Shown: positions 7,032 to 64,000 of the stretch, in pieces
Numbering within the stretch: the first letter of the stretch is position 1
How the letters are laid out: each line of letters begins with the position of its first letter
DNA from: Rhodosorus marinus CCMP1338
Taxonomy: Eukaryota; Plantae; Rhodophyta
Reading direction: 5' to 3'
Assembly (NCBI GenBank): GCA_029953675.1
Contig: JAMWBK010000008.1
Coordinates: 496,001-560,000 of the forward strand
Length of the DNA: 64,000 nt
Position numbers and translations under genes: made by a program
The notes under the pieces: model-generated
What the model saw: the letters and a program-made list of their open reading frames with translations, nothing else
What the model was told of the DNA's origin: nothing
Database searches by the model: none

Positions 7032-7137
7032 GTAGGTGATGATCCGTAGGTAGGTAGTGTTACGAGGAGTCACCTGGCGGTGACGTCCCGTTCCCTATCG
7101 TAGGACACCCACCCGGGGTTGTTAGTTTCTCAATAAA

Positions 7138-7800
7138 GGGGGTGGGGTGTGTAGCATCCGCCACGGTTCTTTCTTGCCGTACACCTACCTCTCCGTCGTG
7201 CATAATCCCGGAATCGGGAGTCCTAGCAATTGTCGTATATTCAGGTGCAGGCCCTTACCACTCAATTTTAATGGCTTACAAATACCGAAGAAGTCTGGCC
7301 CGAGAAGCCGAATACATTTGGAGCGAATCATAGACTGTCTACAAACAGCCCCTACCGAAGACTTGGCAAGAAACAACCCTACATGGCAGCAGGTCGCCCT
7401 CCCCTGCAGGAGGGGAGGCCTTGGATTCTGCACTCGAAGACGTGTCAAACCCATTGCCTTCTACACGGCATAGATACACACCTTCCAGGAGAACCAAGGC
7501 TACTGGCCACACGTCAAAGCCTGCAAGAAAGAACCGTGGCGGATGCTGCACACCCCACCCCTAGAAGCCCACATCTACTCCGCTCTACGGACTCCCTGAA
7601 GGGGCAAATCTTACAGGGTAGCTCTGCGATACAGAGACACGTCAACCCTGAGACCAACCCACGGAGCTCGCCTGCGTCACGAACCTGACTGAGACCCCCT
7701 TTGTCCAACAAATTCCTAACCAGCCCTGGTGAAGCATGGTTCCATCCAAATTGTTTTCACCGGCTGGTCTCTCATTCCCTGGTCGACCCCGAGTACAGAG
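7138..7800. mobile_element. Family 2 post-RT fragments in mixed orientation
   Basis: + strand WQQVALPCRRGGLGF (thumb motif). - strand LHLNIRQLLGLPIP. Bases 7138-7178 are an inverted copy of 7522-7561. Confidence 0.7.
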
Positions 7801-12440: not shown

Positions 12441-12960
12441 CGATGATGATCCGTTTATTCAGAGGCTAACTACTCTGAGAAGCGAGAGAGTAGACGCTGA
12501 TGACGCGCGTCCACAAACAAAGCAGAATTGGATCGCCACAGGGTCAAAGAATGCTCCGTGAGCAGACTATCTAAACGCCCCGGGTCGTTGCGAAACAGAG
12601 CTCGCAGCCACCGAGAACCTACACTATCTATCAAGCCAAAGCACTCAATAATGAGAGGCACGAACCGGAATGTCACCGCTGAATCGCGAAAGGTAGGGTT
12701 TGACATCGCTGCCGCGTACTGCGAATCTTTTACTTGCCGCATGGACCGAGCTGCAGCTCCTCGACGCCGAGCCGACGCAGGCAGGTACCTGGTCGCCTGA
12801 GGACAAGGCATGGAGAGGTCAATGTACTCACTGCGACGCGCATTGAGGTCAGTCACAACGAGATCCGCCACCCGCTGTACCTCTGGGGCGTCACTCTCAT
12901 AAGCAATTTCCGATGCCACGGCCAGAGCGACCTCATACTCCACTTCTCGGTCCGTACCGA
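12441..12960 (-). mobile_element. Family 1 3' fragment (RLE plus tail)
   Basis: ORF 12470-12973 encodes the RLE domain. The tail appears as GATGATGATCCGTTTATTC at ~12442. Confidence 0.9.
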
Positions 12961-13180
12961 GATATTGGTACAAACCGCGTACAAAGATTCCACCATTCTC
13001 CGACTTCGACTGGGCTGGTGCAACGGCGACATAAAGAGATCTGCACTGAGCTGGCGCGCTGCCTCAACATCCTGCAGTTTAGGGATGTTCAGCAAGAACC
13101 TACAGATTACTTGACAAACTCGAATTTGAGACCGATCTGGTTGGTGTCGATCCACCCACGAACAGCGCAAACAAAGATTT
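12961..13180 (+). mobile_element. Fragment of a third RLE-type retroelement family
   Basis: Translation VQRRHKEICTELARCLNILQFRDVQQEPTDYLTNSNLRP shows the RH...EP...LRP(D) pattern of an RLE start and differs from families 1 and 2. Confidence 0.6.
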
Positions 13181-13860: not shown

Positions 13861-14159
13861 CACCGTCTCTCGCTTCTTCACGGAGCTTTCTTTGACCCTG
13901 TGGCGCTCCAATTCTGCTTTGTTCGTGGACGCGCGTCATCAGCGTCTTGTCTCTCCCTTCTCAGGGTAGTTAGCCTCTGAATAAACGGATCTCAGGGTAG
14001 TTAGCCTCTGAATAAACGGGATGGCATGCTTTATACGCCACCCCACCAAGGAAGCCACCTCGCCAAGAAACTCGTAGGCCGGCACCAGATCGTCAGGGGT
14101 GCCAAGGAGCGTCACATCGTCATGGAAGGCGACTACACTACACGCGGCTACACTACACA

Positions 14160-15052
14160 AAAAAACTTTTCCTCGGACATACATCGCGACTCGTACGCCA
14201 CCCTTCTAGGTGGTTCAGCTTCCTCTCCGCCTTCGACTTTGGCTCGCCTTCGTGCTTTGGGGGGTAGCCTCAGCTCTCACTTCTTTACGGTCATTCCTGC
14301 CTACCCGCGGCTAGTGATAACAGACTTCGAGATGCGCACGAGCTTACGTTTGTACTTTGGCTTGCCCCAACCGCCATGGCCCGCGGCTGGGGCCTCGAGT
14401 TGTAACCTGTGCGGTAGCCACGTGCCGTGCGGTGAATTCGGTGGACACCAGGGGTTGGCGTCCTGTCCGCAGGTCCAGGGGGCCCGGACTCGTCGGCATA
14501 CGCGGCTCAACCGGTTGCTGTTTCGCTATCTTCGTTCCCAGATGCTGGGCACGGACCGGGAGGTGGAGTATGTGGTCCCTCTGCCCGTCGCCACGGCAAT
14601 TACTGATACGGCTGACTCACCAGGGGTGCAGCGGGTGGCGGATCTAGTGGTAACTGATCTCAGCGCCTGTCGGAGTGAGTACGTTGACCTTTCCATTCCT
14701 TGTCCTCAGGCGACCAGATACCTACCCGCATCTGCACGCTGCCGTGGCGCTGCGGCTCGGTCAATGCGGCAACTGAAGGAGTCCCATTACGCTGCAGCTA
14801 TGTTGGACTCTACGATCCGCGATTCGGCCTTGTCCTATCGGTTTGTTCCACTCATCATCGAGTGTTTTGGTTTAGTTGATTGTGTCGGCTCTCGCTGGCT
14901 TCGTGGGCTCTTTCGTCACAGCCCAAGTCGTCTTGATAGCCTCCTCACGGAGCTGTCCTTAACTTTATGGCGTTCCAACGTGGCTTTACTGTTCGACGCG
15001 CGTCATCAGCGTCTTGTTTCTCGCTTCTCAGGGTAGTTAGGCTCTGATAAAC
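14160..15052 (+). mobile_element. Family 1 subfamily b 3' half (CCHC-RLE), open frame
   Basis: ORF 14026-15036: CNLCGSHVPCGEFGGH..LASC, RHTRL, VADLVV, FVPLIIECFG, ...HQRLVSRFSG*. It is diverged from subfamily a at the DNA level. Confidence 0.88.
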
Positions 15053-17150: not shown

Positions 17151-18924
17151 TTTCATCGCGTTTATTCAGAGGCTAACTACCCTGAGAAGCGAGAGACAAG
17201 ACGCTGATGACGCGCGTCTACTAACCAAGCAGCATTTGAGCGCCACAGGATGAAAGAAAGCTCCGTGAGCAGACTGTCTAGACGCCCTGGGTCGTTGCGC
17301 GGAGTCACTCTCGTCAGCAATTTCCGATGCCACAGCCAGAGGGACCTCATACTCCACTTCTCGGTCCGTACCGAGCGATTGAGGACGAAGGTAGCGGAAA
17401 AGCCATCGGTTGAGCCTTGTATGGCGTCTGATCCGGGCCCCTTGAACCTCCGCACAAGACGGCAACAAGTGCTTACCATAATCACCCCAAGGCATATTGG
17501 TCCCGCACAATGCGCATCGAGAATCCCGCTCAACAGGCAAAGGGGATTGCGGCAACCCCAGGTACAGTCGCAAGCTTACACGAAGTTCGAGATCGGTAAG
17601 CGCCAACAAACTCGACGCCAGGGTTCGGCAGTCCCTGCTGCAGCCCCGTGTGTAGCAAATGGTGTAGAAACTGCCGAGGATATTGACGCCATGGCTTTGC
17701 CGTCGAGACCGCCAGAGGAGAGCGTTTCCCGGTCGGGTCCGGCCCCTTCGAGGACCGATGTAATCCAAAAAAATCTTTCATCGGACATATATCCGGATTC
17801 GTATGCCACCCTTCTGAGTTTACCTTCCTGCTCGGCGTCGACTTTGGCTTGCCTGCGCGGTTTGGGGGGGGCGTCTCAGCTTCCGCTTCTTCACGGTCCT
17901 ACCGGCGTATCCGCGGTTGGCGCTTACCGATCTCGAACTTGATCATCCGTTTATTCAGAGGCTAACTACCCTGAGAAGCGAGAGACAAGACGCTGATGGC
18001 GTTCGTGCTCGGCGTCGACTTGGGCTCACCTGCGCGGTTTTGGGGGGGAGTCTCAGCTACCGCTTCTTCACGGTCATACCTGCGTATCCGCGGTTGGCGC
18101 TTACCGATCTCGAACTTGATGATGATGATCCGTTTATTCAGAGGCTAACTACCCTGAGAAGCGAGAGACAAGACGCTGATGACGCGCGTCCACAAACAAA
18201 GCAGAATTGGAGCGCCACAGGGTCAAAGAATGCTCCGTGAGCAGACTATCTAAACGCCCTGGGTCGTTGCGAAACAGAGCTCGCAGCCAGCGACAACCTA
18301 CACTATCTATCAAGCCAAAGCACTCAACATGAGGGGGACGAACCGGTATGTCACCGCCGAATCGCGAAAGGTAGGGTTTGACATCGCTGCCGCGTACTGC
18401 GAATCTTTCACTTGCCGCATGGACCGAGCTGCAGCTCCTCGACGCCGAGCCGACGCAGGCAGGTACCTGGTCGCCTGTGGACAAGGCATGGAGAGGTCAA
18501 TGTACTCACTGCGACGCGCATTGGGGGTCAGTCACAACGAGATCCGCTACCCGCTGTACCGCTGGGGCGTCATTCTCATCAGGAATTTCCGATGCCACCG
18601 CCAGAGCGACCTCATACTCCACTTCTCGGTCAGTACGGAGCGATTGAGAACGAAGGTAGCGGAAAAGCAAGCGGTTGAGCCGCGTATGGCGTCTGGTCCG
18701 GGCCCCTTGAACCTCCGCACAAGACACCAACAGATGCGCACCATAATCACCATTGGTTGATAGTGTAGGTTCTCGTTGGCTTCGTGAGCTCTTTCGTAAC
18801 TACCCAGGTCGTCTTGATAGCCTCCTCACGGAGCTGTTCTTGACCTTGTGGCGTTGCAACGCTGCTTTATTGTTGGACTCCCGTCATCAGCATCTTGTTT
18901 CTCGCTTCTCAGGGTAATCTAGAA

Positions 18925-19474: not shown

Positions 19475-21015
19475 GTTTCTTTTTCCTCGGCTAGTGCTCA
19501 CTGTCTCCCAGGGGCGCCATGCCTGTCCCATTAGACGTGAAGTCCAGTCTTTTCTCGCAGGGGACTTTGCTTTCCTGGAATCTTTGTACCTTGCTAGTGT
19601 GTCTACTTCCTCTTTGAAGTCGAACGACTTCGCCTCCTCTCGTTCTCATCGCCAGGCTAGGGCAAAGGCAGCAGTGGCACAGGGGGATATTCGGCGGGGG
19701 GCGGCCATTCTACAGCAACGCGTTTCAGTCGAGCGTTATCGAACTGACTTGGCTGACACAGTTGCCGCGTTGTTTCCTGCGCACGACGCGAATTGGAACC
19801 CTGCGTTCCAGCGTGTCTTAGATCCTTATGTCGCCTCCACGATTGACACGGGCAGGTTGCTTGGTTCGGCCTGAAGAGGTTTTGGCTCTTCTTGGGTCCG
19901 CCCCGAAGGGTCGTGCACCGGATCCCTCAGGTCTCCGGGTTGAGCTTTTGCACTGGTTGGGCGAGGAGGGCCTCGACGCCCTTGCGCGAGTGGTGGAGGG
20001 TCTTGTAAATGGGGACGATTTTTGCATCGATGCCTGGGCCCTACTGTCGCGGTCGCACCTGGTGCTACTCCGTAAGCTTGGGCATTCGCGCCAGACGCAA
20101 TCCCTACGCCCCATCGGGATGTGCGAGACCCTGCGCAAGTTAGCGAGCCGTTTTCTGTCTCGCACGCTCACTAATGAGGCACGGGGTTTTTTCGGCCTGA
20201 CCCAGGTGGGTGTGGGCTATTCGGGCGGCTGTGAGCTGGTGACTCGCATCATGCAGTCGGACAGCCTCGGGGAGGAGCCTTTCGGTACACTTTCGGTCGA
20301 TTTTGCGAACGCCTTTAACAGCGTGTCGCGTGTTCACGCGCTCGAGGTGGTTCGTCAGCTCTTCCCTTCCGGTTTCCGTTTCGTGCGCCGGGTCTACGGG
20401 GAGGGGCCAACTTGCCCTCGCCTTGTCACCTTGGGTGCAGACAGCCAGAGCTTTGTGTCACAGACGGGTGTTCAGCAGGGAGACCCCTTAGGGCCTCTTC
20501 TGCACGCACGTGGATTGCAGTTGGCGCTGTTGCGCGTGCAGCATCAGTCCCCGCGGGTCCGCGTCGTCGCCTTCCATGACGATGTGACCCTTCTCGGGAC
20601 TCCTGATGATTTGGTGCAGGCGTACTCCCATCTGGGCGAGGTGGCGTCCTTGATAGGCGTACGGATCGATCACGGCAAGTGTGACTTTTGGGGAGGCCCT
20701 CAGTGTGCTACGGCCCAGGTTCCCTCTCTCTGTTCCGGGACATTTGGCGTCCCGAGGGCCTCATTCTATTCGGTGTCCCTGTGGGCACTGCGAGTTTCGT
20801 GGAGCGCAACCTTCGAGCGCGGCTGGGCCGCCACGATGAGCTCTTGAATGAGCTGTGCCGCCTACCGGAGGGGTACCTCCAGATCGCTCTGCTCCTCTTC
20901 AGGTTCAGTGCGTGTCAACGCCTGAACTATTTTCTGCGGCAGCTCCCTTCGACGTAGGGGCCTTGGCTAGCCCTTCGCGCTGATCAGCGTGCGAGGGACG
21001 TTTTGAGCACACTGG
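19475..21015 (+). mobile_element. Family 1 subfamily b RT domain, frameshifted
   Basis: ORF 19828-20847: LRPIGMCETLR, VDFANAFNSVSR, GVQQGDPLGPLL, VAFHDDVTL, GVRIDHGKC. Confidence 0.9.
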
Positions 21016-25387: not shown

Positions 25388-25837
25388 TTAAGCCGTTCAG
25401 TTCACTAATATCCACTATATGCTCTGTGGGGAAGATCTGCTTCTAGATCTAGTAGATCGGCCGACCTACTGGACTAGATCATCTAGTGCGACCATCCATG
25501 GTGATTGATGATACTATAGTGATTGATTCCATGGGGATTGATACTATTGTTACTATTGTCGTGTTAGTGCGGTCTCGTGGATCTTCACAGTGTGTATCTA
25601 TCGGGTCAGATTCCCCGGAACAATCTATTTTCGGTTGTTTGACCTGATCTTGTTGTTGTTTCGTTTTGTGGGTCTTTAAGTAGGAAGCACAGCAAGTTGC
25701 GTTTTGAGGCTGTACCATCGGCGGATTGAGGTGGGGGAGGCGCTTTGAGGTGTAGGTTCTAGTTGTTGATTTGCTGCGGTTTAGCATTTCTCGAATGATT
25801 AATTCGTGTTTGTTGCTTAATAGCTATATTGAGAAAG

Positions 25838-26236
25838 ATGAAGGGATTGCTTGTAATGATTGTGGTGCTGGGACTGTTAGCTGGAGATGGAGTTGTGCAC
25901 GGTAGTGCGAACATTGGGGAGGAAAAGATGAATGCGCTCATTGGAAAGCATCCGGTTCTAGTATTTTCCAAGTCCTATTGCGGATTTTCTAAAATGGCGA
26001 AGCACTTGATAACAGGTCTCTACCCTCAGGCGAAGGTCGTTGAATTGGATCGAGAAGAGCATGGGACGGAGATGCAGAACGTGCTAAAGAGCAAGTACGA
26101 GCATTACACGGTTCCAGCAGTTTTTCTTGGGGATACTCTCGTCGGTGGTAACTCTGACGTTCAGAAGCTGAACGCGAACGGAGAGCTAGACCAAATGATC
26201 AATCGGGTAATTAGCGAATGGGAAGATGAGCTGTAG
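25838..26236 (+). CDS. Glutaredoxin with an N-terminal signal/anchor and a CGFS site, intronless
   Basis: Hydrophobic N-terminus LLVMIVVLGLLAG, then HPVLVFSKSYCGFS, TVPAVF and VGGNSD. Confidence 0.9.
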   Translation: MKGLLVMIVVLGLLAGDGVVHGSANIGEEKMNALIGKHPVLVFSKSYCGFSKMAKHLITGLYPQAKVVELDREEHGTEMQNVLKSKYEHYTVPAVFLGDTLVGGNSDVQKLNANGELDQMINRVISEWEDEL

Positions 26237-27600: not shown

Positions 27601-29500
27601 AGTCGTTTGCGCTGAAGATGATGCTGAAATGGACGTTGTAGCCGTGCCGTTGAGGCCGACAGAGGAGTCTGTTACCCGGTCGGGTCCGGCCCGTTCGAGG
27701 ACTGATGTAGTACAAAAAAAACCTGTCTTGGGACATACACTGGGACTCGTACGCCACCCTTCTGCGTTCGCCTTCCTCTCCGCCTTCGACATTGGCAAGC
27801 GTCCGTGGTTTGGGGGGGGAGTCTGAGCTCCCGCTTCTTTACGGTCATTCCTGCCTACCCGCGTTTGGTGATGACAGACTTCGAGCTGCGTACGAGCTTG
27901 CGCTTGTACCTAGGGTTGCCAGAAACCCCATGGCCTGCGGACAGGGATTCGAGATGTAATCTGCGAGGCGGCTCAGTGCCTTGCGGTGATTTTGGTGGGC
28001 TTGTTGGCATCTTTTCCGCAGGTGCAAGGGGCCCGGACTCGACGCCATACGCGGCTCAACCGCTTGCTGTTCCGGTATCTTCGTTCTCAGGTGCTGGGCA
28101 CCGGTGGAGTATAAGGTCCCCCTGCCGTTGGCAACGGCAATTACTGATGGGGCAGACGCCCCAGTGGTGCAACGGTTGGCGGACCTAGTGGTCACTGATC
28201 TGAGTGCTCGTCGGAGTGATACATCGACCTTTCTATCCCTTGTCCTCAGGCTACCAGATACCTGCCAGCCTCCGCTCGACGCCGAGGCGCTGCAGCTCGG
28301 TCAATGCGGCAACTGAAGGAATCCCAGTACGCTGCGGCAATGCTAGATGCTACTCTTCCCGATTCGGCGTTGTCCTATCGGTTTATTCCACTCATCGTCG
28401 AGTGCTTTGGTTTAGTTGATAGTGTAGGTTCTCGTTGGCTTCGTGAGCTCTTTCGAAACAACCCAGGTCGTCTTGATAGCCTCCTCACGGAGCTGTCCTT
28501 GACCTTTTGGCGTTCCGACGCTGCTTGATTGTCGGACACGCGCCATCTTCTTCTTCAAGTTTATTCAGAGGCTAACTACCCTGAGAAGCGAGAGATAAGA
28601 CGCTGATGACGCGCGTCTACAAACAAAGCAGCATTTGAGCGCCACAGGGTCAAAGAAAGCTCCGTGAGCAGACTATCTAGACGCCCTGAGTCGTTGCGAA
28701 AGATACCTCGCAGCCAGCGAGAACCTACACTATCTATCAAGCCAAAGCGTTCAATAATGAGGGGGACAAACCGGTATGTCACCGCCGAGTCTCGAAAAGT
28801 AGGGTTTGACATCGCTGCCGCGTACTGCGATTCTTTCACATGCCCCAGGGACCGAGCTGCAGCTCCTCGACGCCGAGCGGCCGCAGGCAGGTACCTGGTC
28901 GCCTGAGGACAAGGCATGGAGAGGTCAATGTACTCGCTGCGACGCGCAATTAGGCCAGACACAACGAGATCCGCCAACCGCTGTACCGCTGGGGCGTCAC
29001 TCTCGTCAGCAATTTCCGATGCCACCGCCAGAGGGACCTCATACTCCACTTCTCGGTCCGTACCGAGCGATTGAGAACGAAGGTAGCGGAAAAGCAACCG
29101 GTTGAGCCGCGTATGGCGTCTTGTCCGGGCCCCTTGAACCTTCGCACAAGACGCCAACAAGTGCGCACCATATTCACCCCAAGGCACAACGGTCCCGCAC
29201 AATGCACATCGAGAATCCCACCCAACAGGCGAAGGGGGTTGCGGCAACCCCAGGTACAGTCGCAAGCTTACACGAAGTTCGAGATTGGTAAGCGCCAACC
29301 GCGGATACGCAGGTATGACCGTGAAGAAGCGGGAGCTGAGACTCCCCCCCAAACCGCGCAGGCGAGCCAAAGTCGACGCCGAGCAGGAAGGTGAACTCAG
29401 AAGGGTGGCATACGAGTCCCCATGCATGTCCCTTTTTTACGCCATCAGCGTCTTGTTTCTTGCTACTCATGGTAGCTAGGCTCTTGACTAAACGGATCAT
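27600..29500. mobile_element. Array 2: family 1 3' halves, + copy (~27600-28545) facing a - copy (~28558-29420), plus a 3' end at 29440-29500
   Basis: ORF 28576-29427 on - is an open CCHC-RLE frame. The + copy has frameshifted CCHC-RLE. Confidence 0.9.
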
Positions 29501-30634: not shown

Positions 30635-32423
30635 ACGTCTGATTTGGACTACCTTTGCCAATAGAGTCAGTGGGTTTCATCCTCGCGATCTTTCTTGTCA
30701 TTGGAGAGCTTTTAGAGTGGTTTTACACAGTTCTAGGACAAACACCTTGCTTCAGAGGGCTTTATGAGAGATTAACATTGGACAGGAATAGATCGATTTG
30801 AGAGGTTTCGAGTTGAATTTCAATAGGAAGAGGGCGAAGAAAAACTACAAAGACGCACGTGAACACTAACGAGCTTTGCAATGAAGAACTTCAAATATAT
30901 TGAAACTCAGATCAGACGACAATCCGAAATGATTGGAATTCAATCAATTAAGCTGGTCTTTCCTTGAGTTTCAAGAGAAGCAAAAAAAACAGAAATTGAA
31001 TGACAAGTCGATCCACAAGCTTTAAGTGATCGGGAACTGTATGTGTATCAATTAGGAGCTGTTCTGCCAAATCTAAGCGAGTAGCTTTCACTGCTTGCAC
31101 TGATAAATTTGTTGTGCCCCAGCTCTGCTCTTCGTAGTTCGACATGTCTGATCTTCTTCCCCGCTCTCTTCCTTCCTCCCAAAACCCCCCAACATCACGA
31201 CCCAAAACAATGGCTATCCCCACACCACATGGCTTCGTCACCAAACTCCCCCCTTAAGAGAAAAACTTTTCTTTCATAAATCGATTATTATATTACATTT
31301 TTCTGTCAATAAAAACTGTCCCAAGATAATTTTTGAAATATATTGGATATTATTTTGGTAATTAATATACAAAAACAATAATGCATATATTTTAACCCCT
31401 TCGTAATGTTCTCAATTATCTGAAATAAATTTGGTATATGTTTCCATGTTTTTCATAAAATCTTGCTCCACACTGGCTTTTAGGAGCCAACCAAATTAAA
31501 AGAATGTAGAAGACTGTAAAAACTGACCGCCAAAGGACCCCTCTCTATCCTGCTGGAATCCATATAAACATTCGCATTCTGCCTTTTATTTGTTGTTTTC
31601 AAACAAGGAAATGAAAAACTGGGAGGAAAATCGGTCTTCATTGAACTTGTGCTGAGGTGGTTAGCTTTTTTATCAGTCGATAATGAATTTCATGAATATT
31701 TTGATGGGAGCAGGTACGTGGCTCCGATGGTCAAGAGCATCGAAAGGTCAAAGGCGTCAGGCAGCGTGCATGGGGAAGGATTCTTATTTAGCCTGTGGAA
31801 TCCAACCCCCCTTTCCGGTCTTCCTCTTCGCATCCACTCATATTCAAGCAGATTCTGTTAAATTTTAGACAAAACAAAGGGGGGTAGTTGAATTGGATTT
31901 TTATATTTCAAGTACTGTTTTCTGAGTCGGTTTAGATATTCTTGGATATGTTGATGCAATCGGAAGGGGTAGGAGGGGGGGGAGGGGCGGTATCGGCAAA
32001 GAGGTTTGTTGGAATGGATTTTTATGTTTTTGTCTGTGTGTAGCAGTATGTTTTGGTGTTTTCGTTCGGAAGTTGTCAATAGTATTTGTGTATCAGCTGT
32101 GTAGCAGCAGCCGTAGCAGCTGTTTCAGCTGTTGAGTTGAGGAGTAATTGCGAGAGTGTTAAAGGATGGGTGCACGGAAATTTTTGATGATCTGTACATG
32201 TGTCTCCCGGTTCCTGGGGTTGAAGGTTTGAGAGGTAGGATGTTGGTTTAGGGGTACGGGGGAGGAGGAAGAGGAGGAGGAGGAGGCTTTTGGCATTGAC
32301 GATATTACAATCTGGGGCTTGTGGAACGGATTTGGATTTAGGAAAATTGGGAGGGATTTGTTCGGTACGGGGTTGGTTCAGGTTCAGGGGTGAGGGAGTT
32401 TTCTGGGTATTGAGTTGATCGCG

Positions 32424-33345
32424 ATGGAGGGAGGAAGAGGAATAGGCTTGGTTGTGCTGTTGTTGGCTGGGTTGGTGGCTGGGGAGGTTACTTTTACATC
32501 GAGGTATCCTTACATAGGGGCAATGATTGGTGGCGAAGGGGAAGATGCCGAGGTGTTTTGCTCGGCGGCGCTGTTGGCTAAGGATACTGCAATTACTGCC
32601 GCGAGATGCATCAAAGGTCACAAGTATGAGAGGACCAGGGTAAAGGTTTGTTTTGGGATGCATGATCCAGCTAGAGAACCCTCAATTTGCTCCTATGTGC
32701 GGAGGGCTGTTGTTCATCCGGACTTTAGGTTGAACAGGCCCGAAAACGATGTCGCCGTTTTCTCACTGGAATCTGCCGTGGGTTGGAGAGACGTGGAAGG
32801 ATTTGGCTCCCGGTTGAGAGCCGTGAACATCTCTTTCAGCGAAGTAGGAGATGACTTGAGCCTTCAACATATTGGGTACCGCAGCAAGAGTGCTTACATC
32901 GTGGAATCAAGGCAAATGCTCTACACGTCCTCGTTCAAGCAACTGGCTCCCCAGTGCAACAAGTCGAGATTGTATCGCCCAGACTCTCCCGCTGAAAGCA
33001 AAACTGACGAATTTGCTTGCACGACGGAGCAGATGGAGGCAGAAGGCCGAACATCGCTCGCGGGCGTGAACAGGGGGGCTTTCTTGTTGCACACTGGGCC
33101 TTCGTACACGAAGGATTTCATCGTTGGGTTGTACAGTGCTAGTCACGACGGTAAGCTATTGACTGATAGTGTTTTGAGCAGGTTTAGAGACTCCGATTTC
33201 TCACCGCATATGAATTATGTCATTGTCCGCAGATTATCTTGACGGGTCCAAAGGCTTCTTCGTGCGTTTCTCCAACCATAAGCGATTCATACTGTTGGGG
33301 CTCGGTCAATTCCAACATCGGGTGCCGTTCGCGAAGCATTATTGA
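32424..33345 (+). CDS. Secreted trypsin-fold serine protease homolog, catalytically inactive, 1 intron (33151-33232)
   Basis: Signal peptide, FCSAALL, TAARC (for TAAHC), VVHPDF, NDVAVF, GVNRGAF (for GDSGGP). The spliced C-terminus is DYLDGSKGFFVRFSNHKRFILLG...KHY*. Confidence 0.8.
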
Positions 33346-49400: not shown

Positions 49401-52011
49401 CCTTCCGGATATGATACGAGGCTCAGAGGTAAGTCTCACACAGAAATTCTGCGTGCTCTGGGCCCCACAATCCATCTTAGAATGGACATTGGGGGGGAAC
49501 AGGGATAAAACCAAACTTGACTGTGCTCCACGTCGCAGATGACGGCCGAGGTCTTGCAACTTCTAGCTGCTCACCGAAATTTGCGAACGCTGTGCCGAGG
49601 ATCTTCTATATCCACCAAACACGAGACGCCGCAACAAGGAAACGATGCCGAGGTAGCTACCATAACAAATCTGTTCTTGGATTCTTGACAGCGACTCAAG
49701 AGCCAACATCAACTTCTGCACCAACAGTTGGACAGGAACTCGACGAGAGATGCGAAGATCGCCAATCGAAAAAGGACTGAGACTAGGACAGAACCAACCA
49801 CGCTCGAACTTGCAGGTTGGACTGTTGATGGTCCATTCATTGCTTTGGAGGAGTGTATCGAGGCTCTCAAATGGCTTCAAGGTTGGTCGACAAGCCATAA
49901 CTGGAGAATGAGGGTGCCCGAGCTGAAAACCACACTGAACGTGAAAGCTTTTCTGACTGCAGGGCATCGAGAGAAGTCAATCCTTGAGAGCAGGCAGCAC
50001 TTAAGGGAGTTGCTCATGAGCAACTTGAGCAAGCACAAGTACTCCTTCAAGCTCAACTCTGAGTCAACCAAGCAGTCGGTAATGTGATCAGCGCTCCCTG
50101 ATGTTCATCACTACAGCTTGGGCTCCGACTTAGCAACCTTCTTTCCCATCGTTAGTTGACGTCACTCTTGGGCTGCTTTATCTCCGAGCTCTCCGCAGGA
50201 AGAAGGGAAACGGGAAGTTTCCAGCACTCTGGTGAACTCGGCGCTGTCGTGCAGATCATTGAATCCCTCGGGAAAGATCAGTTCGACGACGCCTGCATCG
50301 CATTTCGAAAGCTAGCTTGCGACGCTACTACCCGGGAGGAAGGTGGGAACTACTGAACCAGTCTGACTTTTAGTCCTCCAATCCATGCTGAAAATTCACT
50401 TTTTGCTCGATTTCCGTTCATTGATTGTCCAGATATCCCAACTGCGTTTTCAGGAAAGGACGCCCTCCACGTGATTCTCAAGGCTTGTGATGCTTTGATC
50501 CTGGACCTCGCTTGGAAGCACGTTGAAGAGCTTGTGACGAGTGGTATCTCGTTCATTCGATACGCGGAGCGATGTTCCTTGGGTGAGTTCCAACCTGTGT
50601 GTGATCTGTCAAAGCATTAAAGGCTTTCACAGGCTAACACAGACGACTCCCGGAGCCTGCCCGTAGGACTTGGGCTGCGTGAGGACCTCGGCAAGTGGGC
50701 AAGTCGGATTCTCAGGAACACTGACGTTGAGATGTCCCGAGAGCTTACGGGTCTGCTTGTGGTCGCCGCGGTGGAGGCTTGTCCGGCTAAGGGAGTTGAC
50801 ATTGCAGTGGAACTCCACAAATATTTCGGCGACATAGCTGACGAAAACGACATGGACTCGGGTAGCGACAAGTAACTTTCCGCTGACATTCGCAAAGCAA
50901 GCCGACAGATTCCAAGTGATACTCATCCGGTCACATTTCTCGTCCGTGAAAGATCGAAGGGTATATGGAAAGGCGGGATCGCGAGTTCCACGGCCTCTGT
51001 TGCCATGCGCTCAATCTACGAGGCTCTCGGTCAAACCTATGACGAGATCGAATGGGGCATTACTGCGCTCCAATCCAATCCCCATCGCAAGGTATGAACG
51101 TGATCCAGTCCCCAAGCAAAAAGAGCTCTAGGCGCTCCTGCTAACCCTTCATGCGAACGCTGACTATCCAAAGGCTGAGCTTGACGGTGCTGTCTGCTCC
51201 CGTGCTAACGAAGTCATCGATGTGCTGGGCCCAATGCTCAGATGTCGAGTCCGTCAGTGGTCTTGTGGGGAAGCGATCCTACGCAGTACCATGCGGCTGT
51301 ACCGTGTGCTGACGAGCTGGTGCAGAGCTGAGGTAACCTCTGCCGCGCAACTTGATCACGAGAAACGAACGCATTCAAACCTCACCCATTCGAAGACACC
51401 CGAAAATTGAACTTGAACTTTGCGTCCCTGCTGGATAGCTTTCTTCCGTCCTAACTGCCGCCGAGCAAGTCACAAAACTGGCAGAATCATCCTCCCTGCT
51501 GACCCCCAAAGTCTACAGCTTCCTGACATACCTCACAACCTTCCAGTGCTCCGGGAACGCGAAGAGCAGGACCCTCAGGGAATCCAAACTCGTCCCCAAT
51601 CTGATCTTCAACATCGAGCAATACGAACGCTCCTTAATTCGCCTCAATAAGAAATTCCAGGTAACCACGTGCACTCGCAAGCTCCTCCATTTGTCCGGTT
51701 TCAAAGAACGACCTCAAGATTTTTTCGACTTGATCAAAACTGAAACAGTTCTATTGTGTTCTCTGCTTCTTCCCGGCGCCGTTCGTTAAAACCGACACTT
51801 CACCCCAAAGCTGAACTGCTTAACTTCAATGCGTCGAAGCACGGCGAGAGACTTCAAAATCCTAGAAGAGTATTTAGTAGCCGACGGTCAGGCGCAGACT
51901 GACCGTCAGCTAGAAGTGATTCGGAGAATACACAGTGGCGATGACGACGAAGTAGTCATGTCGGAACCGGGAAACGGGAAACGGAAGCGTAAATATTTCC
52001 AAACTGTTTGA
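46440..52011 (+). CDS. FANCI: Fanconi anemia group I protein, multi-exon
   Basis: PSFVYQ, GWDVV, KVHAFLREEMLSEIVSRI, FRDSAILVARKG, ALGQQAVVRL, EPLPQLMSC, PNLIFNIEQYERSLIRLNKK, RSTARDFKI. The start is approximate. Confidence 0.88.
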
Positions 52012-52196
52012 AAACGGGGTGCTGTCGGTTCCCGGTGTGATGAATTGAGGTGGGAGAAGCGTTTGTCGGTGATGTGAAAAGTTTTGCGTTTGGGTTGAAC
52101 TGCGCGGAGAGATGTGTAGTTCGTGAATATTTTGAAGCGGGAGTGAGCTCTTTGGGAGGGCTTTGAGGAAGGGGGAGGGGGGTTGGGGATGAGAAG

Positions 52197-52812
52197 ATGG
52201 TAACTTTTCAGGGTCCAGTGGTGAGCTTGATTTCAAAGTAGGAAACGTGTTGTTGGATTTGGATCGGTTTGTATGAAGTTTAATTGGGTTTCTTGTTTTT
52301 GTTTTGGCTTTGTTCGAAGGTGGAGGTCCTTATCGCAAAACTGCATCGAGTGACATGTACTGAAGCGAATGTGAATTATGTGGGTTCGGTGACTGTGGAT
52401 GGAGAATGGCTTGATGCTAGCGGACTATTTGAGGGACAGAAGGTGGACATTGCAAACTTGAGAAACGGAGAACGTTTTTCGACGTATATTATCCGAGGAT
52501 TGGAAGGCTCTGGCATTCTCTGTACAAACGGCGCTGCAGCGCATCTAGTAATGCCTGGCGACAAGCTAATTATTATGGCGTATGGTAGGCTACAACACCA
52601 AGAAACTGGCCGAGTTTGGACCCCTTGCACTCACAATGAAAAAATTCTTGTCAACAGGATGGATGACTCGAGAAGAATACAAGGAGTTTGATCCAAAGGT
52701 GCTTGCATTCCACGACATTGCGGACTATCGAATTGTTAACGACGTCGTGGAGTTCAACTCAAAGCCGACGTACGATATTCTACGACGAGAAGTCCCGGAC
52801 GACTCCAAATGA
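52197..52812 (+). CDS. panD: Pyruvoyl-dependent L-aspartate 1-decarboxylase, 2 introns (52221-52319, 52585-52657)
   Basis: Spliced protein [35 protein letters not shown]...NGERFSTYII..GSGILCTNGAAAHLVMPGDKLIIMAY|GWMT. The Lys, His, Gly-Ser cleavage site, Arg and Tyr positions are conserved. Confidence 0.92.
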
Positions 52813-53789
52813 GCTGAGATAAAGTGTTCACCCAGGCATTCTTCACCCGATGAGAAGATCCGTACAGAGACTTCCGATGCTTGTCGTCTCCTAACTCAGC
52901 GTATCTCTCTCACTGCTTCTGTTCTTCCTGCCCGACGTGGATGAACGCCACATATTTTCGCTCCAAGTATTCTGTGTACCATAGGCGTCCATACAAGGCA
53001 ATGGACAGAATTATCAAGCGTCGAATGCGATTGATTAAAAACAGCGTATCTCAAGATAAGACCATCTATTCCGAAACCCCTTCCCAGAAATGCGAAACCG
53101 AAAACTCTGCAACGCCGGCGACGGCTACTGAGAAAAGCAGAAGTCCAAGCTACTCAAGCTTCAAACCTACTCAAGCATATCCTAGAAACACACAACATAC
53201 CAACCACAGCTGAAGCCCGCATGCCTAGATCCAAGGAGGCCATGAGGTGAGCTGACCGCGGATGGCAGTAACAAGAAACTCTCCTGGTCGGATAGGTTTG
53301 TACAGCATTGAATCCATTGCCAAAAGCTTGATTACAGTGCGAAACCAGATTCCACGGGCTTCTACAGTCCAAAGAAAGAACACTACACTGCGGCCTGATC
53401 AGAAAGACTCTTTCAGGCCTTGATTACATTTCCCGAATGAAACTTCATGAATCCAGCTCGGTGCCAGATTTTCAAAGCTCTGGATCCGTTGTACAAGACT
53501 GTCCTATACTGCGAGAGCAGATATCCGAAGGACGAAAAAAGGCAGCATGGAGCTGACAAAACCGGAAACCAGCTCCCATCAAATAGGCGAGGCTGTTACC
53601 GAACTACTCCACTATCACCCGCAGCTCGTGAAGAGCTTTGATGGGGCATGCAATGAAACGAAGATATCTACGAGACGGTGAAGCTGAAAGAACTGCTTCG
53701 ATGACAGAGTGATCTGGGTGTTCAGAGGGACAAGCACTGCAACCTGCTGTTAATTTTTGATCTGAACTGATACGAATACGTTTTGGACG

Positions 53790-54800
53790 ATGAAAGTTTG
53801 GATTCCGTTAGAATCGAATCCCGAGCTCATCACCAAATATGCTGGTGAGCTTGGCATGGGGCCTGGGTACGAGTTTCAGGAGATTCTGTCGTTAGAGTTG
53901 CTGGAGATGGTGCCTAGGCCGGTTTACGCGGTAGTCTTGTTGTTTCCTTTAACGGAAAAGATCGTCTCTGCTAGTGAAGAGCGTGAGAAGGAGAATTTGG
54001 ATCAGTCCGTATCTTCGTCAGCACCTGAGCAGCCGTTCTTCTGTCGTCAAACTATCAGTTCAGTACCCTGACAACTCTTCCCCAGCGAGCCCACTACGCA
54101 GAACTGACGCCTTACTGTGATGCTGGTCCACGTTGAATTAGGTAACGCATGTGGGACCATCGCTGTTCTTCACTCCGTAACAAACAACATGGACAAACTA
54201 TCGATACGACCTGACAGCTTCTTTAAGAAGTTCTTCGACGAAACGATCTCCATGAACCCATCAAAGAGGGCAGAGGCCCTTCAAAACAACGAAGAGCTGG
54301 AAGCTAGTCAAGAAAAGTTCTCCAAGGTAATACAAACGGTTGCTTTTCACACGACCTCAAAAAGTGCAACTGCTTATCAACCCATACCCTGAAACACTGA
54401 TAGGAAGGAGAAACCGCTGCACCAGACCGACATGATCCACTAGACACCCATTTCATAGCTTTCGTTGAAAGCTCTAACAAGCTCGTTGAACTTGATGGAA
54501 GAAAGGCTTCACCTATTGACCATGGCGATACGTCACCTGATTCATTGCTCGAGGTAGATTCCCAACAACAACCACGCGACGACACTGCTGCGTCAATCAT
54601 CTTCTGTGTAGACGTTGGATAAGGAAGATGTCCTGGTCACTGCTTGTGGAAAAGCTTAGAACAACACTGCCATGGAATCACTCATTCACTTCTTATCTGT
54701 GTTCCACATCCGCGAACAGGACGCTGCTAGAATCATCAAAGAAAAGTTTATGGCGATGGATCCATCAGAACTTCGGTTCACAATGATGGCATTGGTCTGA
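53790..54800 (+). CDS. Ubiquitin C-terminal hydrolase (UCH-L1/L3 family), multi-exon
   Basis: WIPLESNPE, VPRPVYAVVLLFP, QTI|GNACGTIAVLH, HFIAFV..LVELDGRK, FTMMALV*. Confidence 0.93.
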
Positions 54801-58670: not shown

Positions 58671-59021
58671 TGATGTGCAGAATCGATCTTATCAAAAGAT
58701 ACCGTTGAAAAGGACACTTCCAGATCGGAATCTGTATATATCTCAATAGATCTGACACCCAGTATCAACCGATTGGAGTGGTTGGGGCCGGCGCTGAAGC
58801 TTTCAAGTTAAGGAAGCAACAAGTGAATGAGAAAAGAAGTTTCTGCTTGCCTCTTGAGTTTTCTGATCGTACTGGTTGGTTTGTTCCGCGTCGTGTCACT
58901 TCTACTAGGTAAGCACTCGTCGGGTTTGTATATGTTTCTAATGTGGCTATTTTGGTGCTCTTGTTTTTTCTGTGATGTTTTGGATAAAGGAGTGAGTTGA
59001 ATTGAGAGAAGATACTACGTG

Positions 59022-60114
59022 ATGGCGTTTGTAGCGGGAGTCGTCGGGTCTACCCGAAGTTCAGAGTCTGTGATATGTGCTGCAATGGACAGGAGGGCAT
59101 TCTTGGCTGCTGCTGGTGGAACGACGGCTTCAGTCCTTTTCCAGGTCTCAAATCCGAGTGGAAGTGTTTCCCATGCTGCAGACGCTGTAGAGTACACTCT
59201 ACCACCTCTGCCTTATCCATACGATGCTCTTGAACCTTACATCGACGCGGAAACGATGAAAATTCACCATGACAAGCACCACAAAGCCTACATGAACAAA
59301 CTCAACGGCATTGTTGATAAAGTGGATGCTATTAAAAGCCCGACAATAGAGAATCTGGAGACGGCTTTGAAAGGTATCGTGCAAGTCAAGCAAAAAGACA
59401 AGACTGAGCCCAAGCTTGATGTCTAAGTCCGCTCTTTCTCAACATCTTCCGAGCAACTACCAGATATAGGCAGCATCAAGGACGATTCTGTCAAGAAAAC
59501 CCTCAGGAACAATGGTGGCGGATGTAAGTTTTTTTTTGAAACTACCATTAGTTCTTTCATCACAGAAGCTTAACATAGCGATATCATGTCATCCTCAACC
59601 TTGCTTGTCGTTCAATGTACTCCGTGCGAGTCACATCAGATTACAATCACATCCTTTACTTCGAAGAAATGTCACAGAACGGCGCTCGAGAGCCTTCTGG
59701 AAAGCTTGCCGATGAGATAACGAAAGAGTTCGGCAGTTTCACGGAATTCAAGTCCAAGTTTACGAACGCCGCTGTTGGACAATTCGGGTCTGGGTACAGT
59801 GGTCTCCTTCTCCATCCTACCAAGCCTTCTAAGATGTCATCCCCGTCTCTCATGCTGAGCAACCTTCAATCTCTGCGTGCGTCCGCGTCGCTCTTGCAAG
59901 GTGGGCTTGGCTTTACCGTGATGGAAAAACTGGAAAACTTGCGGTCAGAGGTTATGCAAACCAGGATTCACCTCTCCTCGATGGTCACAAGCCGGTCTTA
60001 GGATGTGACGTATGGGAGCATGCTTATTACTTGAAGTACAATAATCGCCGCCCGGAGTACGTCGAGGCTTGGTGGAACGTAGTTAACTGGGACGTCGTTG
60101 CGGCTAGAGCTTAA
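59022..60114 (+). CDS. Mn-type superoxide dismutase with plastid transit peptide and Tat-like signal, multi-exon
   Basis: MAFVAGVVG...[18 protein letters not shown], then [64 protein letters not shown]. Confidence 0.92.
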
Positions 60115-60306: not shown

Positions 60307-61469
60307 CTATCTTAGCGTTACTCGGAGCGTCTGTTCGGCTGCTTTTCTGACACGTTCTTGCAAGACGTCGACTTCTGAATTGGTTAGGTTTCTGTCCATC
60401 GACCGATACGATACCCTATAGCAGTGAGATCTGAAAGACACGAGCGACTTCAGATTGATCTATCCACGGTATTCAGCAGGACACAGGGGTGGAGGGTCAC
60501 TGCGTACTTTCCAGTCCCAGGCTTTTCGAAATCGTCAATCAATTCGACACGCTCAACTAGGTTTCCTCCAACCGTCCGCACTAGTTCATAAAAGTCGTTC
60601 TCATGGAAGCCTTGAGGGAGCCAAAACGAAACATCCTTGTAGCAAACAGGATGCTTAGAATAGGGCTTGAATGCGGTGACTTTCCCCGGTTGGAACTGCT
60701 CTACAAACCGTCTGTCATCCGACCAGAATAGTCTAATATCCGGAATTTCGAACAGGACCATGGCAAGTCGTTCAAGACCGAGTCCATAGGCCCATCCGAT
60801 TTCCTCATCTTCGACACTCCCGGCTTGAAGCACACCATGTCTAAGGAGACCGCATCCAAGTAGCTCTAGCCATTCGCCGTTCCATTCTACTTCGAGCTCG
60901 AACGAAGGATCTGTGAACGGGAAGTACGCATCTATCCAGCGAGTTTTCGTGTCCGTTCCGAACAGATGAGAAACGAGGCCTTGCAGAGTCTCTTGAAGGT
61001 CCTGAACCATTGATTCACTACATACGTGCTTGAGGACTCTGACCCCATCCGTTTGGTGAAACACCGGGAAATGTGATCGATCTATGGCATCCCTTCTGAA
61101 GACGTCGCCAGTTATCACAAACTCTCTCTCTCCTTGCCGTAGTAGTTGAACGTCATGCGCAGTCATATGCGGACGGAGAACATGATTCCCATTCACGTAG
61201 TACGTATCTGATATCCTCCGAGATGGATGATCCGGCTCGACTAAGAGATCATCGAAACAGGCCTTCGTTGATGTAACGGAATCCAAATCGCTCCAGAACT
61301 TGAACCTTCTTCCGCGCAAGTTTCGATGGTAGTCCTCGATCAGCCTGCGGGTTGTGCACAGGGGATGCCCCGACCGCAGGTGCAGACCCGCAGATCGATG
61401 TTTCCAGATCTCCTCGGGAACATTTAGAGACCCTCTGGATGCAGCGCAAAGCCGTGCACTCCAACGCAT
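60307..61469 (-). CDS. FARS2: Monomeric organellar phenylalanyl-tRNA synthetase, 1 intron near 60440-60520
   Basis: HPSRRISDTYY, GDVFRRDAIDRSHFPVFHQ, YFPFTDPS, GLGLERLAM, DIRLFWS, and a C-terminal anticodon-binding domain ending SHCYRVSYRSMDRNLTNSEV...LRVTLR*. Confidence 0.95.
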
Positions 61470-64000
61470 CCGTAATGAACAACCACCAGTGGCTAAACAG
61501 AGCGAAACTCTGCCCCTGTCCAAACCTCCTCACTCCTGCCAATCCACCGTCAACCAAATCAAGATCCCTCCAAAACCCCTAAAAATCCCCTTTTCCTTCC
61601 ACGAAAACTGAAACTTCAGTCAATATAAAATTCTAACGAATAGAAGGGTGTTCTTTTGTCAAGTCAATCATAATCTTACACCAGAATCCAATCACTCTCT
61701 ACAGAAGAACATCAGAATCTGATAATTCCATATCTGGGACTGGATCTACATTTTCGTCATTCGTCAATATATACGACAAATGGTGCATATTTTTCTGAAT
61801 ATAGTTAATATTATGGCTATATGAATCTATATTTTCCAAAGTATGGATGGAAATGAACGGACTTTTTTCGAAATTTTTAGTAAGCCGGTTTAGTTTGGTG
61901 AGATCCTCGGGTGAGAGCAGCGTCCAACAGAGAATTTGGAAAGGTAGGTTTAACGTGCGGGGGTGGTGGACGGTAAGAGGGTGGTGGTGTGCACCGAAAG
62001 CGTGGCGTGACGATGCAACGCTGAGATTACGTATCCGCTAATGGACAGGTAGTCCAAGCAGATTTTTTTATGTTTTGAAGACGGCGGTCCGCCACCCTTG
62101 GAAGAACTTTTTTCTTCCCAATGCGCGTAGTGGATCCTGCTTTATAACTCGTTGATTGGCGCAGGCGAATTGTAACATTCAGCAATAGCAGAAGATGGAG
62201 GATTCCTCGAGAGGGTGTGAAACCTAACGACTTCCGTGAAAACTGAATTCAGAGCAAAGCTGTCGGTGAGCACTGAGGAGCGTTGGCCCACATGGAAACG
62301 TGAATAAATCATGTGTCGCAGCGCAGTCGGAGTTGAGCAGAACGTTCCAAGCCATGAGCATATATTAGATCGGCTCCGCTTGAGTTCCGACTTTTACTTA
62401 ATTGTTATCGCCATCGCGATCTGCTACCATCGTCCAGTTACGCTCTCCCGATTCCAAATTACGGGGGGGGTTCTTGGAAAGGAAACCCAGACAAAACCCA
62501 GTGTCCAACCGCCTTCTGCCGTGCATATACGTACTGCCACATAGACAAAACGAGATGGGGGGGGGGGAGTAGGGGACTCATTGGTGGCTTGCGCACACCC
62601 ATCCAAGGGGGTTAACTTTGCTGGCTCGTCTTTGGTGGAAGGTTGAACACACTGATGCGTCCTTAACCAACTAAAACACCCCACGGAAACAGAGCTTTGC
62701 TCGTTGAGTGACATGAAATTCGAGACAAGACGGATTGGACTCAACAGAAACCGAAACCTCCCTGAGAACATTCCAATTGCTAGAATGAGGAGCTGGAACT
62801 TGTCCGCAGATCAACGCTATGCTTGCATCAGAATGCGAATCGCGCTCTGACTGCTGGACACATCGATGAACGTCAAAAGACCAAAGCATGAAACAAGAAT
62901 ATTTTCAAGGCGTTATCCAGTTAGTTCGAAGACGACGAATGTATGTCTCAACGAACAGCCTCTGAAACATCCCAATTTGGGGGTTCTGAAACGTGCCAGC
63001 AGATCCTCCTCATCCTTCTCAACGCCGGCTCAGGTTTCGTCACGTTTTTATTCATATCGAATCCACAACTTATTATTTTTCTTAGGGACTAAAGAAGTTT
63101 AGATTCACATTTTGTCAGTCCCATGAAGCCTATTCACAAAAAGCGAACAACCCTTCAACCGCAATACACGTCACACACACAATAAACCAACGAAAAGCGA
63201 ACAGTACCGTCTCCAATTCATCACCAACGGAGCTGTGAGGAGAGGCGCGCCGTTGAGGCGCATTAAGGCTTTCTGAGTTTGTTTTTTTTGCCCAAGCGAA
63301 GCCGAGGTGTTTCAGGTGTAGGTATCCCGCCTATTGTAAGCCCGAAAATTTTGCCCCTCTAGCTTAAATGACCCTTCTACTCGATCAACCTTCAAACCGG
63401 TCACCATCACCGGCCACGTGCTCATCCAGGAGGTCAAAAGTTTCTTTTTCCAGTGTTTCGTAACGGCTGCTCCACGTCGCCAATAGATCTGCCCGACCGT
63501 GCTCACCGTGGGAATCAATAAACCATTTCAAAGCGAACCCACTTCTCAACTACTAACAGGCCACGACTGTTTTCGTTGCGTCCAAATAAAATTTATCCAA
63601 TTACAACATAGAAAGCTCTATGCTTCAAATTTTCTTCGTTATTTCACTATCTTCTGCCAAAGATCGCCCAAAGATGACGGTTCAGATTTACCTCATATCC
63701 AATATAGTTCGTCCCAATATGCTATAAGCATCAAAAACACACTTGGCAAGCCAATTAATGAGCTTTATCCACAATCTTCAAGGAAAATTGTCTTGGAGAA
63801 GGAAAAAATGTTAGGAACCGTAGTAGGGCCCCTAGGCCCCCTCGGCTTGAAGGTAAATCATGACCTCCGTCTGACTAAGTCGTCCACTAGAGATATAGAA
63901 AACCCCAATCTATTGAACAAATAGTTTTACTTTTTTTGAAAGAATTTAAACTTCGTCACTCTCCGATTTACGAATTTTGAGCCAAGGAAAAGCAAGGTCC

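Follow-up and report, generated by a model that had tools for sequence, protein, structure and literature searches.

A bacterial-type pyruvoyl aspartate decarboxylase (PanD) gene with spliceosomal introns downstream of FANCI in the red alga Rhodosorus marinus, most likely of horizontal origin

The DNA analyzed here is a stretch of 64,000 nucleotides (positions 496,001 to 560,000 of the forward strand of contig JAMWBK010000008.1, assembly GCA_029953675.1; in the following, the window) from Rhodosorus marinus CCMP1338, a single-celled marine member of the red-algal class Stylonematophyceae. Its nuclear genome, which was published together with a study of the minicircular mitogenome, comprises 31 Mb with 8,392 genes and 24,821 introns (PMC10250338). 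Judged from its sequence, the forward strand of the window at 52197-52812 encodes a bona fide bacterial-type pyruvoyl PanD within a eukaryotic nuclear chromosome. A preliminary description of the locus had reported a complete panD with the Gly-Ser cleavage site and the catalytic residues, two clean introns, a short C-terminal extension, and a position 185 bp downstream of the gene for FANCI, and each of these points was borne out, at a level far above chance. Splicing yields a coding sequence (CDS) of 444 nt in 3 exons with an uninterrupted frame, corresponding to 147 aa, and both family profiles and an alignment with the Escherichia coli enzyme, described below, confirmed its completeness; furthermore, both introns are of the GT..AG type, with splice junctions that are confirmed by transcripts of relatives, and the distance to FANCI is exact. 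The features of the locus are as follows.

51132-52011 (+), 3' exons of FANCI, with the FANCI_S4 domain at 51132-51786 and the stop codon at 52009-52011
52012-52196 (+), spacer of 185 nt from the FANCI stop codon to the PanD ATG
52197-52220 (+), PanD exon 1, M1-V8, with the ATG at 52197 and an in-frame stop 10 codons upstream
52221-52319 (+), intron 1, 99 nt, GTGAGC...polypyrimidine...GAAG, GT..AG, phase 0; the related genomic contig L001 has an intron in the same place, and the junction is confirmed by the related transcript product P0002
52320-52584 (+), PanD exon 2, V9 to the first base of the G97 codon, encoding the beta chain, the cleavage site, and most of the alpha chain
52383-52388 (+), codons GGT TCG for G30-S31, the predicted self-cleavage and pyruvoyl-forming site, aligned with E. 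coli G24-S25
52585-52657 (+), intron 2, 73 nt, GTAGGC...AACAG, GT..AG, phase 1 inside the Gly97 codon; L001 has an intron at the same position and in the same phase
52658-52812 (+), PanD exon 3, the rest of G97 to K147, and the stop codon at 52810-52812
52717-52809 (+), C-terminal extension, residues 117-147, past the PanD barrel, with a K-P-T-Y-D-I-L motif; absent from ordinary PanDs

The identity of the upstream gene is supported by two matches to the Pfam profile PF14678 (FANCI_S4; 2.9e-15 and 1.5e-06). For PanD itself, the 147-aa protein matched PF02261 (Asp_decarbox) with 138.3 bits (cut-off 25; E = 1.3e-40) and the NCBIfam equivalog TIGR00223 (panD) with 131.7 bits against a cut-off of 106. 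The top match among solved structures was the PanD precursor of Mycobacterium tuberculosis (2c45, 1.6e-26), and E. coli PanD precursors were also among the best. In the alignment, K15, H17, Y28, R60, T63, Y64, and N78 correspond to K9, H11, Y22, R54, T57, Y58, and N72 of E. coli, and G30-S31 is unchanged in every aligned PanD as well as in all 5 members of the clade described below; all of these residues, including the cleavage site, are encoded by exon 2. Compared to bacterial PanDs, the N-terminus is longer by approximately 6-8 residues, and approximately 30 extra residues are found at the C-terminus.

The fold was tested on an AlphaFold2 model of P0002, an ortholog with 88% identity that served as a stand-in for the window protein. 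The predicted local distance difference test score (pLDDT) of this model exceeds 93 over residues 8-115, and a Foldseek search against the PDB returned exclusively PanDs among the top 40 matches, thus assigning the double-psi beta-barrel fold. The precursor structures 1ppy, 1pqe, and 2c45 were matched, with 1ppy_B superimposing at a root-mean-square deviation of 0.9 A and a target-normalised template modelling score of 0.92. Across the C-terminal extension, pLDDT values range from 35 to 47, and no confident fold is predicted there. It should be noted that the K-L-H-R motif, the Arg of which (E. coli R12) is otherwise nearly invariant, is altered in P0002, where residue 18 is a Gly, perhaps because the strain is polymorphic here or because an error arose in sequencing or assembly.

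The closest proteins to the window PanD were 3 transcript products from MMETSP (P0001-P0003) and 1 gene call on a 14-kb Logan contig. P0002, which likewise comprises 147 aa, shows the same N-terminus and both junction products (including MAYG/MMTREEY), so that both splice junctions and the start codon are confirmed; the N-terminal sequence MVTFQGPV is found in P0001 as well. P0001 derives from the same gene but has kept intron 2, which is read through in frame; apart from this insertion, it is 93% identical. Genomic contig L001 carries a full PanD gene for 150 aa, the introns of which differ in length (94 and 124 nt) from those of the window and are identical to them in position and phase. The transcript contig L002 (995 nt, with a poly(A) end), which encodes P0003 (62-64% identical), comprises the 3' end of FANCI, a spacer, and the whole PanD open reading frame (ORF) in a different frame, preceded by an in-frame stop upstream of the PanD ATG. 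FANCI_S4 is thus encoded upstream of PanD in L001 and L002 too, and the 2 genes are arranged head-to-tail in 3 lineages, with spacers of 185 nt in the window, 119 nt in L001 (9176-9294), and 289 nt in L002.

Among the 3 lineages for which DNA is available, synonymous sites are saturated (proportion of synonymous differences, pS, 0.68-0.87), and the corresponding nonsynonymous proportion (pN) amounts to 0.16-0.21 in the catalytic core, as opposed to a pS of 0.72-0.86, and to 0.43-0.52 in the looser C-terminal tail. The GC content of the window CDS is 0.47 overall and 0.47 at third codon positions (GC3), slightly under the GC3 of its neighbors (0.48-0.61), while PanD GC3 values of 0.52 in L001 and 0.66 in L002 are unlike that of the window gene. 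The gene is under purifying selection, expressed and spliced in relatives, and old in its clade. Regarding the transfer that the preliminary description had proposed, the horizontal origin stands, but the event is not private to the R. marinus genome, since it would predate the split of at least 3 lineages with common introns and synteny.

In order to define the distribution of the gene, approximately 5.8 billion proteins were covered by a word-indexed search with a single sequence and then with a clade profile (8,000 candidates scored), and 1.84 billion cluster representatives by an exhaustive HMMER search with P0002 as query. Furthermore, JGI (Joint Genome Institute) metagenome contigs were scanned with clade-specific peptide patterns, and GTDB was scanned with one genome per species. 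The clade was found to consist of the window PanD and P0001-P0004 only; no further member was found in the protein, representative, or metagenome searches, although taxon labels are scarce in these databases and tblastn was not run on individual red-algal genomes. All 5 sequences exhibit either the FANCI-PanD synteny or near-identity to Rhodosorus. A gap in scores separates the weakest clade member (191 bits) from the next protein (157 bits), and everything below the latter score is a prokaryote-type PanD with at most approximately 62% identity over the core. The best outside match in the representative search reached 52%, and the best GTDB genomes, mostly Bacteroidales, Campylobacterales, and Bacillota together with one cyanobacterium, reached 45-59%. 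In a neighbor-joining (NJ) tree of 296 PanD domains, the 5 algal sequences were monophyletic in 197 of the 200 bootstraps and placed amid prokaryote-like PanDs. Because the distribution is very narrow and everything else that was recovered is prokaryote-like, the most likely origin of PanD is a horizontal transfer from a bacterium into the lineage from which Rhodosorus and a small number of related red algae descend, a reading for which both the taxon distribution and the tree argue. Broad vertical inheritance in eukaryotes was considered as well and rejected, as the five-member distribution would require many losses. No paper on PanD in red algae, other algae, or other eukaryotes was found in literature searches, and a survey of rhodophyte pathways mentions neither pantothenate nor beta-alanine.

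The sister group of the algal clade in the NJ tree comprises 8 bacterial sequences (P0160, P0282, P0289, P0277, P0280, P0287, P0298, and P0301; 110 of the 200 bootstraps), which we refer to as the extended subfamily. Common to this subfamily and the algal PanD are C21 (within CTE), W38 (within DW[LIM]D), a P-x-[IV]-L-L-F motif, and a C-terminal extension of approximately 30 residues that ends in P-x-[YF]-x-[LI]-L. In the corresponding alignment (A3), every row has W38 and P133, and at least 90% of the rows have C21, while the combination of C21 and W38 was found in only 2 of 57 parsed bacterial PanD loci, both belonging to the extended subfamily. The algal tails bear a weak but detectable resemblance to the bacterial ones: a profile of the latter gave 3 of the 4 algal tails a score that none, or no more than a few, of 500 shuffles reached. 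Taken as a whole, the algal proteins scored about equally with profile hidden Markov models (HMMs) of the subfamily and of ordinary PanDs, which therefore do not discriminate between the two. The algal clade is likely to belong with the extended bacterial subfamily.

Those members of the subfamily that have a name belong to filamentous cyanobacteria of marine origin (Symploca sp. SIO and Dapis sp. BLCC M229). In both, PanD is fused to methyltransferase domains: P0277 (Symploca sp. SIO1A3, NER48858.1) is a 674-aa protein in which PanD is joined to N-methyltransferase domains, and a 416-aa PanD-methyltransferase fusion is encoded at 5989-7239 (+) of L012 (Dapis sp. BLCC M229). The fusions contain one or two S-adenosylmethionine-dependent N-methyltransferase domains, one resembling glycine-sarcosine N-methyltransferase (GSMT-like; 5gwx, 1e-6) followed by one resembling sarcosine-dimethylglycine or phosphoethanolamine N-methyltransferases (SDMT/PEAMT-like; 2o57, 2.9e-15). 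This architecture predicts that a single polypeptide would convert aspartate to beta-alanine and further to N-methylated beta-alanine, possibly the betaine; no description of such a fusion was found in the searchable literature. P0160 (L003 4028-6810, a contig from DRR337555), which among the bacterial relatives without a fusion is the closest, is encoded directly upstream of proB-proA and near a sodium:solute symporter, rather than near pan genes, and this context hints at an osmoadaptation setting for the extended subfamily. The Pfam assignments of its neighbors in L003 gave no taxonomic clue, and the contig is gene-dense and bacterial. The ordinary PanD P0164, on the other hand, is encoded in a panB-panC-panD-coaBC operon. 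Another subfamily member, P0287 (247 aa, Logan contig), appears to be joined to a Phd/YefM antitoxin-like C-terminal domain, which may reflect a merged gene call.

PanD proenzymes are cleaved at a Gly-Ser bond via an N-to-O acyl shift, and the N-terminal Ser of the resulting alpha chain is converted into the pyruvoyl cofactor, through which aspartate is bound as a Schiff base. Both the processing residues (T63, N78, Y28, and H17) and the catalytic residues (K15, R60, and Y64) are kept in the algal PanD. Its proenzyme would thus be expected to cleave itself at the G30-S31 bond, unassisted by another protein, upon which S31 would become the pyruvoyl cofactor and the enzyme would decarboxylate L-aspartate to beta-alanine. 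The preliminary description had regarded maturation as a point to be explained, requiring that the enzyme either do without PanZ or possess a substitute, but this is not a puzzle. PanDs of Class I, which depend on PanM/PanZ, are confined to Gammaproteobacteria, PanM is missing from approximately 77% of the genomes that encode PanD, and the Class II enzymes of these genomes cleave themselves in vivo (PMC4537548). The algal protein shares 38% identity with E. coli PanD, and its nearest relatives are PanDs of the Bacteroidota, Bacillota, and cyanobacteria type. Since Class I is exclusively gammaproteobacterial and the algal PanD is placed elsewhere in the tree at this level of identity, unaided maturation is the default expectation.

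Concerning localization, the enzyme is most likely cytosolic, since the first barrel strand begins after only approximately 8 residues, which differ from one relative to another. That a targeting peptide is lacking, as proposed in the preliminary description, is further supported by the in-frame stop preceding the ATG in L002, which leaves no place there for a presequence in an upstream exon. A plastid transit peptide was considered because F4 is reminiscent of the Phe at the N-terminus of such peptides in red algae; given the short segment ahead of the barrel and the lack of conservation of F4 in L001 and L002, this was rejected. Taken together, we have good confidence that the locus encodes a functional, horizontally acquired, and self-processing PanD. 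Coming from a bacterium, the gene would have entered this ancestral red-algal lineage, and would subsequently have gained two spliceosomal introns, acquired the base composition of its host, and been inherited vertically beside FANCI ever since; its product, having no presequence, would act in the cytosol.

Several points weigh against this reading and have to be set against the evidence in its favor. The tree was inferred from Kimura distances over 114 columns and is a distance tree, not a maximum likelihood tree. The attribution of the clade members P0001-P0003 and L001 to red algae only is a presumed one that is based on synteny and similarity. Furthermore, the grouping with the extended subfamily was recovered in just 110/200 bootstraps and HMM scores do not favor this subfamily over ordinary PanDs, and the C-terminal extension could modulate processing or assembly. 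Among the alternatives, it is next to inconceivable that the locus is a bacterial contaminant, an assembly error, or a pseudogene in decay. While the PanD family is overwhelmingly prokaryotic, and while an identical protein was not found in the database even though the latter contains the product of a neighbor on this contig, the two GT-AG introns are demonstrably removed in the transcripts of relatives, the flanking genes on the 2.1-Mb contig (FANCI, UCH, Spo11/Top6A, and Fe/Mn-SOD, a superoxide dismutase) are eukaryotic, synteny and intron positions are kept in the independent assembly L001, and FANCI and PanD share a transcript contig in L002. In addition, the base composition is host-like, the frame is intact with all catalytic residues, and purifying selection is strong. 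An origin from the cyanobacterial ancestor of the plastid by endosymbiotic transfer, followed by loss from nearly all Archaeplastida, would be in line with the cyanobacterial identity of the named sister-subfamily members and with the age of the gene in its clade, as seen from saturated synonymous sites and common introns. However, it requires many independent losses, and no match from another sequenced red alga, a glaucophyte, or the green lineage was obtained in the protein and metagenome searches. The immediate sisters of the algal clade are P0160 and P0282, from non-fusion bacterial contigs, in 142/200 bootstraps, compared to 77/200 for the cyanobacterial fusions; identity to the cyanobacterial proteins is just 38-45%, and the algal PanD lacks a plastid presequence. 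We therefore regard an endosymbiotic origin as improbable. The conserved tight linkage itself might be explained if FANCI and PanD formed one transcription unit, giving rise to a bicistronic or read-through mRNA, as the short spacers (119-289 nt across the three lineages) and the joint assembly of both genes in L002 could suggest. Since short-read transcript assemblers often merge overlapping untranslated regions (UTRs) of neighboring genes, P0002 is reported as a complete stand-alone ORF, and operon-like expression in red algae is not required by any of these data, we consider this very improbable; the L002 contig could reflect read-through or UTR overlap, possibly co-transcription.

A further alternative concerns not the enzyme but its task. 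In the preferred reading, beta-alanine would most likely be used in the synthesis of pantothenate and coenzyme A (CoA). In plants, no PanD homologue has been reported, and beta-alanine is derived from polyamines, propionate, or uracil (PMC6657504); for red algae, an ancient loss of approximately one-quarter of genes is described (PMC6811547). The nearest bacterial subfamily, however, occurs in non-pantothenate contexts, i.e., methyltransferase fusions and proBA. The same enzyme could instead serve mainly to supply a compatible solute or derivative such as N-methylated beta-alanine or beta-alanine betaine, in keeping with the role of the bacterial subfamily from which it would derive. The features in common with the bacterial subfamily (C21, W38, P-x-[IV]-L-L-F, and the C-terminal extension), the fusion of the Symploca and Dapis members to GSMT-like and SDMT/PEAMT-like N-methyltransferases, the position of the L003 member beside proB-proA and a sodium:solute symporter in comparison to the pan operon of P0164, and the marine habitat of R. 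marinus are consistent with such a role. On the other hand, no methyltransferase gene adjoins PanD in the window, where a UCH peptidase and a PCI-like protein are encoded downstream, the link to the subfamily is moderately supported, and what the cyanobacterial fusions make is likewise only a prediction; no data on beta-alanine betaine in Rhodosorus were found. This use is unlikely. More speculatively, the algal PanD might be a domesticated member of a previously undescribed subfamily that natively feeds beta-alanine N-methylation, in which case the cyanobacterial fusions would be single-polypeptide aspartate-to-beta-alanine-betaine synthases and the algae would make the osmolyte instead of or besides CoA; we regard this extended scenario as doubtful.

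The remainder of the window was inspected as well. A single-exon ORF for an organellar phenylalanyl-tRNA synthetase (PheRS) at 60450-61523(-) is 100% identical to R. marinus NDN08_006034 on a 2.12-Mb contig, with the next-best matches originating from other red algae (55%). Further ordinary host genes are listed in the following.

1382-2537 (-), Spo11/Top6A
25829-26236 (+), glutaredoxin
32415-33242 (+), trypsin-like serine protease
53766-54636 (+), ubiquitin C-terminal hydrolase (UCH, peptidase C12)
59019-59426 (+), Fe/Mn superoxide dismutase

Scans for Rfam families and tRNAs gave no match in the window. No PanD with 100% identity was present among the approximately 5.8 billion proteins, and since NDN08_006034 of the same contig is there, the PanD gene is probably missing from the deposited annotation of GCA_029953675.1. 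At 3245-5186 (-), ORF pieces encode an N-domain of GFO/IDH/MocA oxidoreductases followed by bacterial hexapeptide-repeat transferase repeats, an architecture that is typical of bacterial nucleotide-sugar modification enzymes and may represent a second gene of bacterial origin in the window. Furthermore, the region of approximately 6500-30000 exhibits a G+C content of 0.55-0.59, compared to approximately 0.48 elsewhere, and contains broken retroelement copies on both strands, with a reverse-transcriptase domain at 19828-20847 and a repeated ORF family at 9916-10812, 12470-12973(-), 14026-15036, 17166-17768(-), and 28576-29427(-).

The chemistry of PanD is textbook knowledge, and it is well known that single bacterial metabolic genes have entered red algae by horizontal transfer. 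PanD is, however, treated as a prokaryotic enzyme, which makes an intron-bearing, expressed, and selectively kept red-algal copy unusual. It implies that the bacterial route in one step from aspartate, which land plants and yeast lack, is open to a photosynthetic eukaryote, and adds a clean case of metabolic gene transfer after the ancient gene loss in red algae. With PanD apparently missing from the deposited protein set, pathway reconstructions for R. marinus would wrongly show a gap at this step. Moreover, a eukaryote-adapted and presumably self-processing PanD could serve the engineering of beta-alanine and pantothenate production, and the PanD-methyltransferase fusions suggest how marine cyanobacteria might make beta-alanine betaine, which can be put to the test.

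Bacterial vitamin B5 genes that were domesticated in eukaryotic nuclei and carry introns are known from cyst nematodes (panC) and whiteflies (panBC); these act at another step of the pathway and in parasitic or symbiotic hosts, whereas Rhodosorus is a free-living alga. The other eukaryotic routes to beta-alanine, i.e., the catabolism of uracil, polyamines, and propionate in plants and yeast, as well as the pyridoxal phosphate-dependent aspartate/glutamate decarboxylases that are found in insects and archaea, lead to the same product, which is passed on to pantothenate/CoA or other beta-alanine derivatives, through unrelated enzymes and chemistry (PMC6657504, PMC7142369). Compared to the extended bacterial subfamily, with which it shares the motifs and the tail described above, the algal PanD is just 38-46% identical, stands alone, and lacks a methyltransferase domain. 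Class I PanDs (E. coli and Salmonella) belong to the same family and use the same chemistry, but their cleavage needs PanZ-acetyl-CoA (PMC4537548), and the algal PanD, which is 38% identical, does not group with them. In its enzyme features, the algal protein resembles Class II PanDs (M. tuberculosis 2c45 and Corynebacterium glutamicum), which match the same PF02261 and TIGR00223 profiles and have the same Gly-Ser site, the same set of K/H/Y/R/T/Y/N residues, and the same double-psi beta-barrel, and like which the algal PanD is not expected to have a PanM/PanZ partner. The algal gene differs from these in being nuclear and interrupted by two spliceosomal introns, in encoding approximately 8 N-terminal and 30 C-terminal extra residues as well as C21 and W38 where most PanDs have V/L, and in lying outside a pan operon with a conserved linkage to FANCI; based on its sequence, the encoded enzyme would nevertheless be expected to behave like one of Class II.

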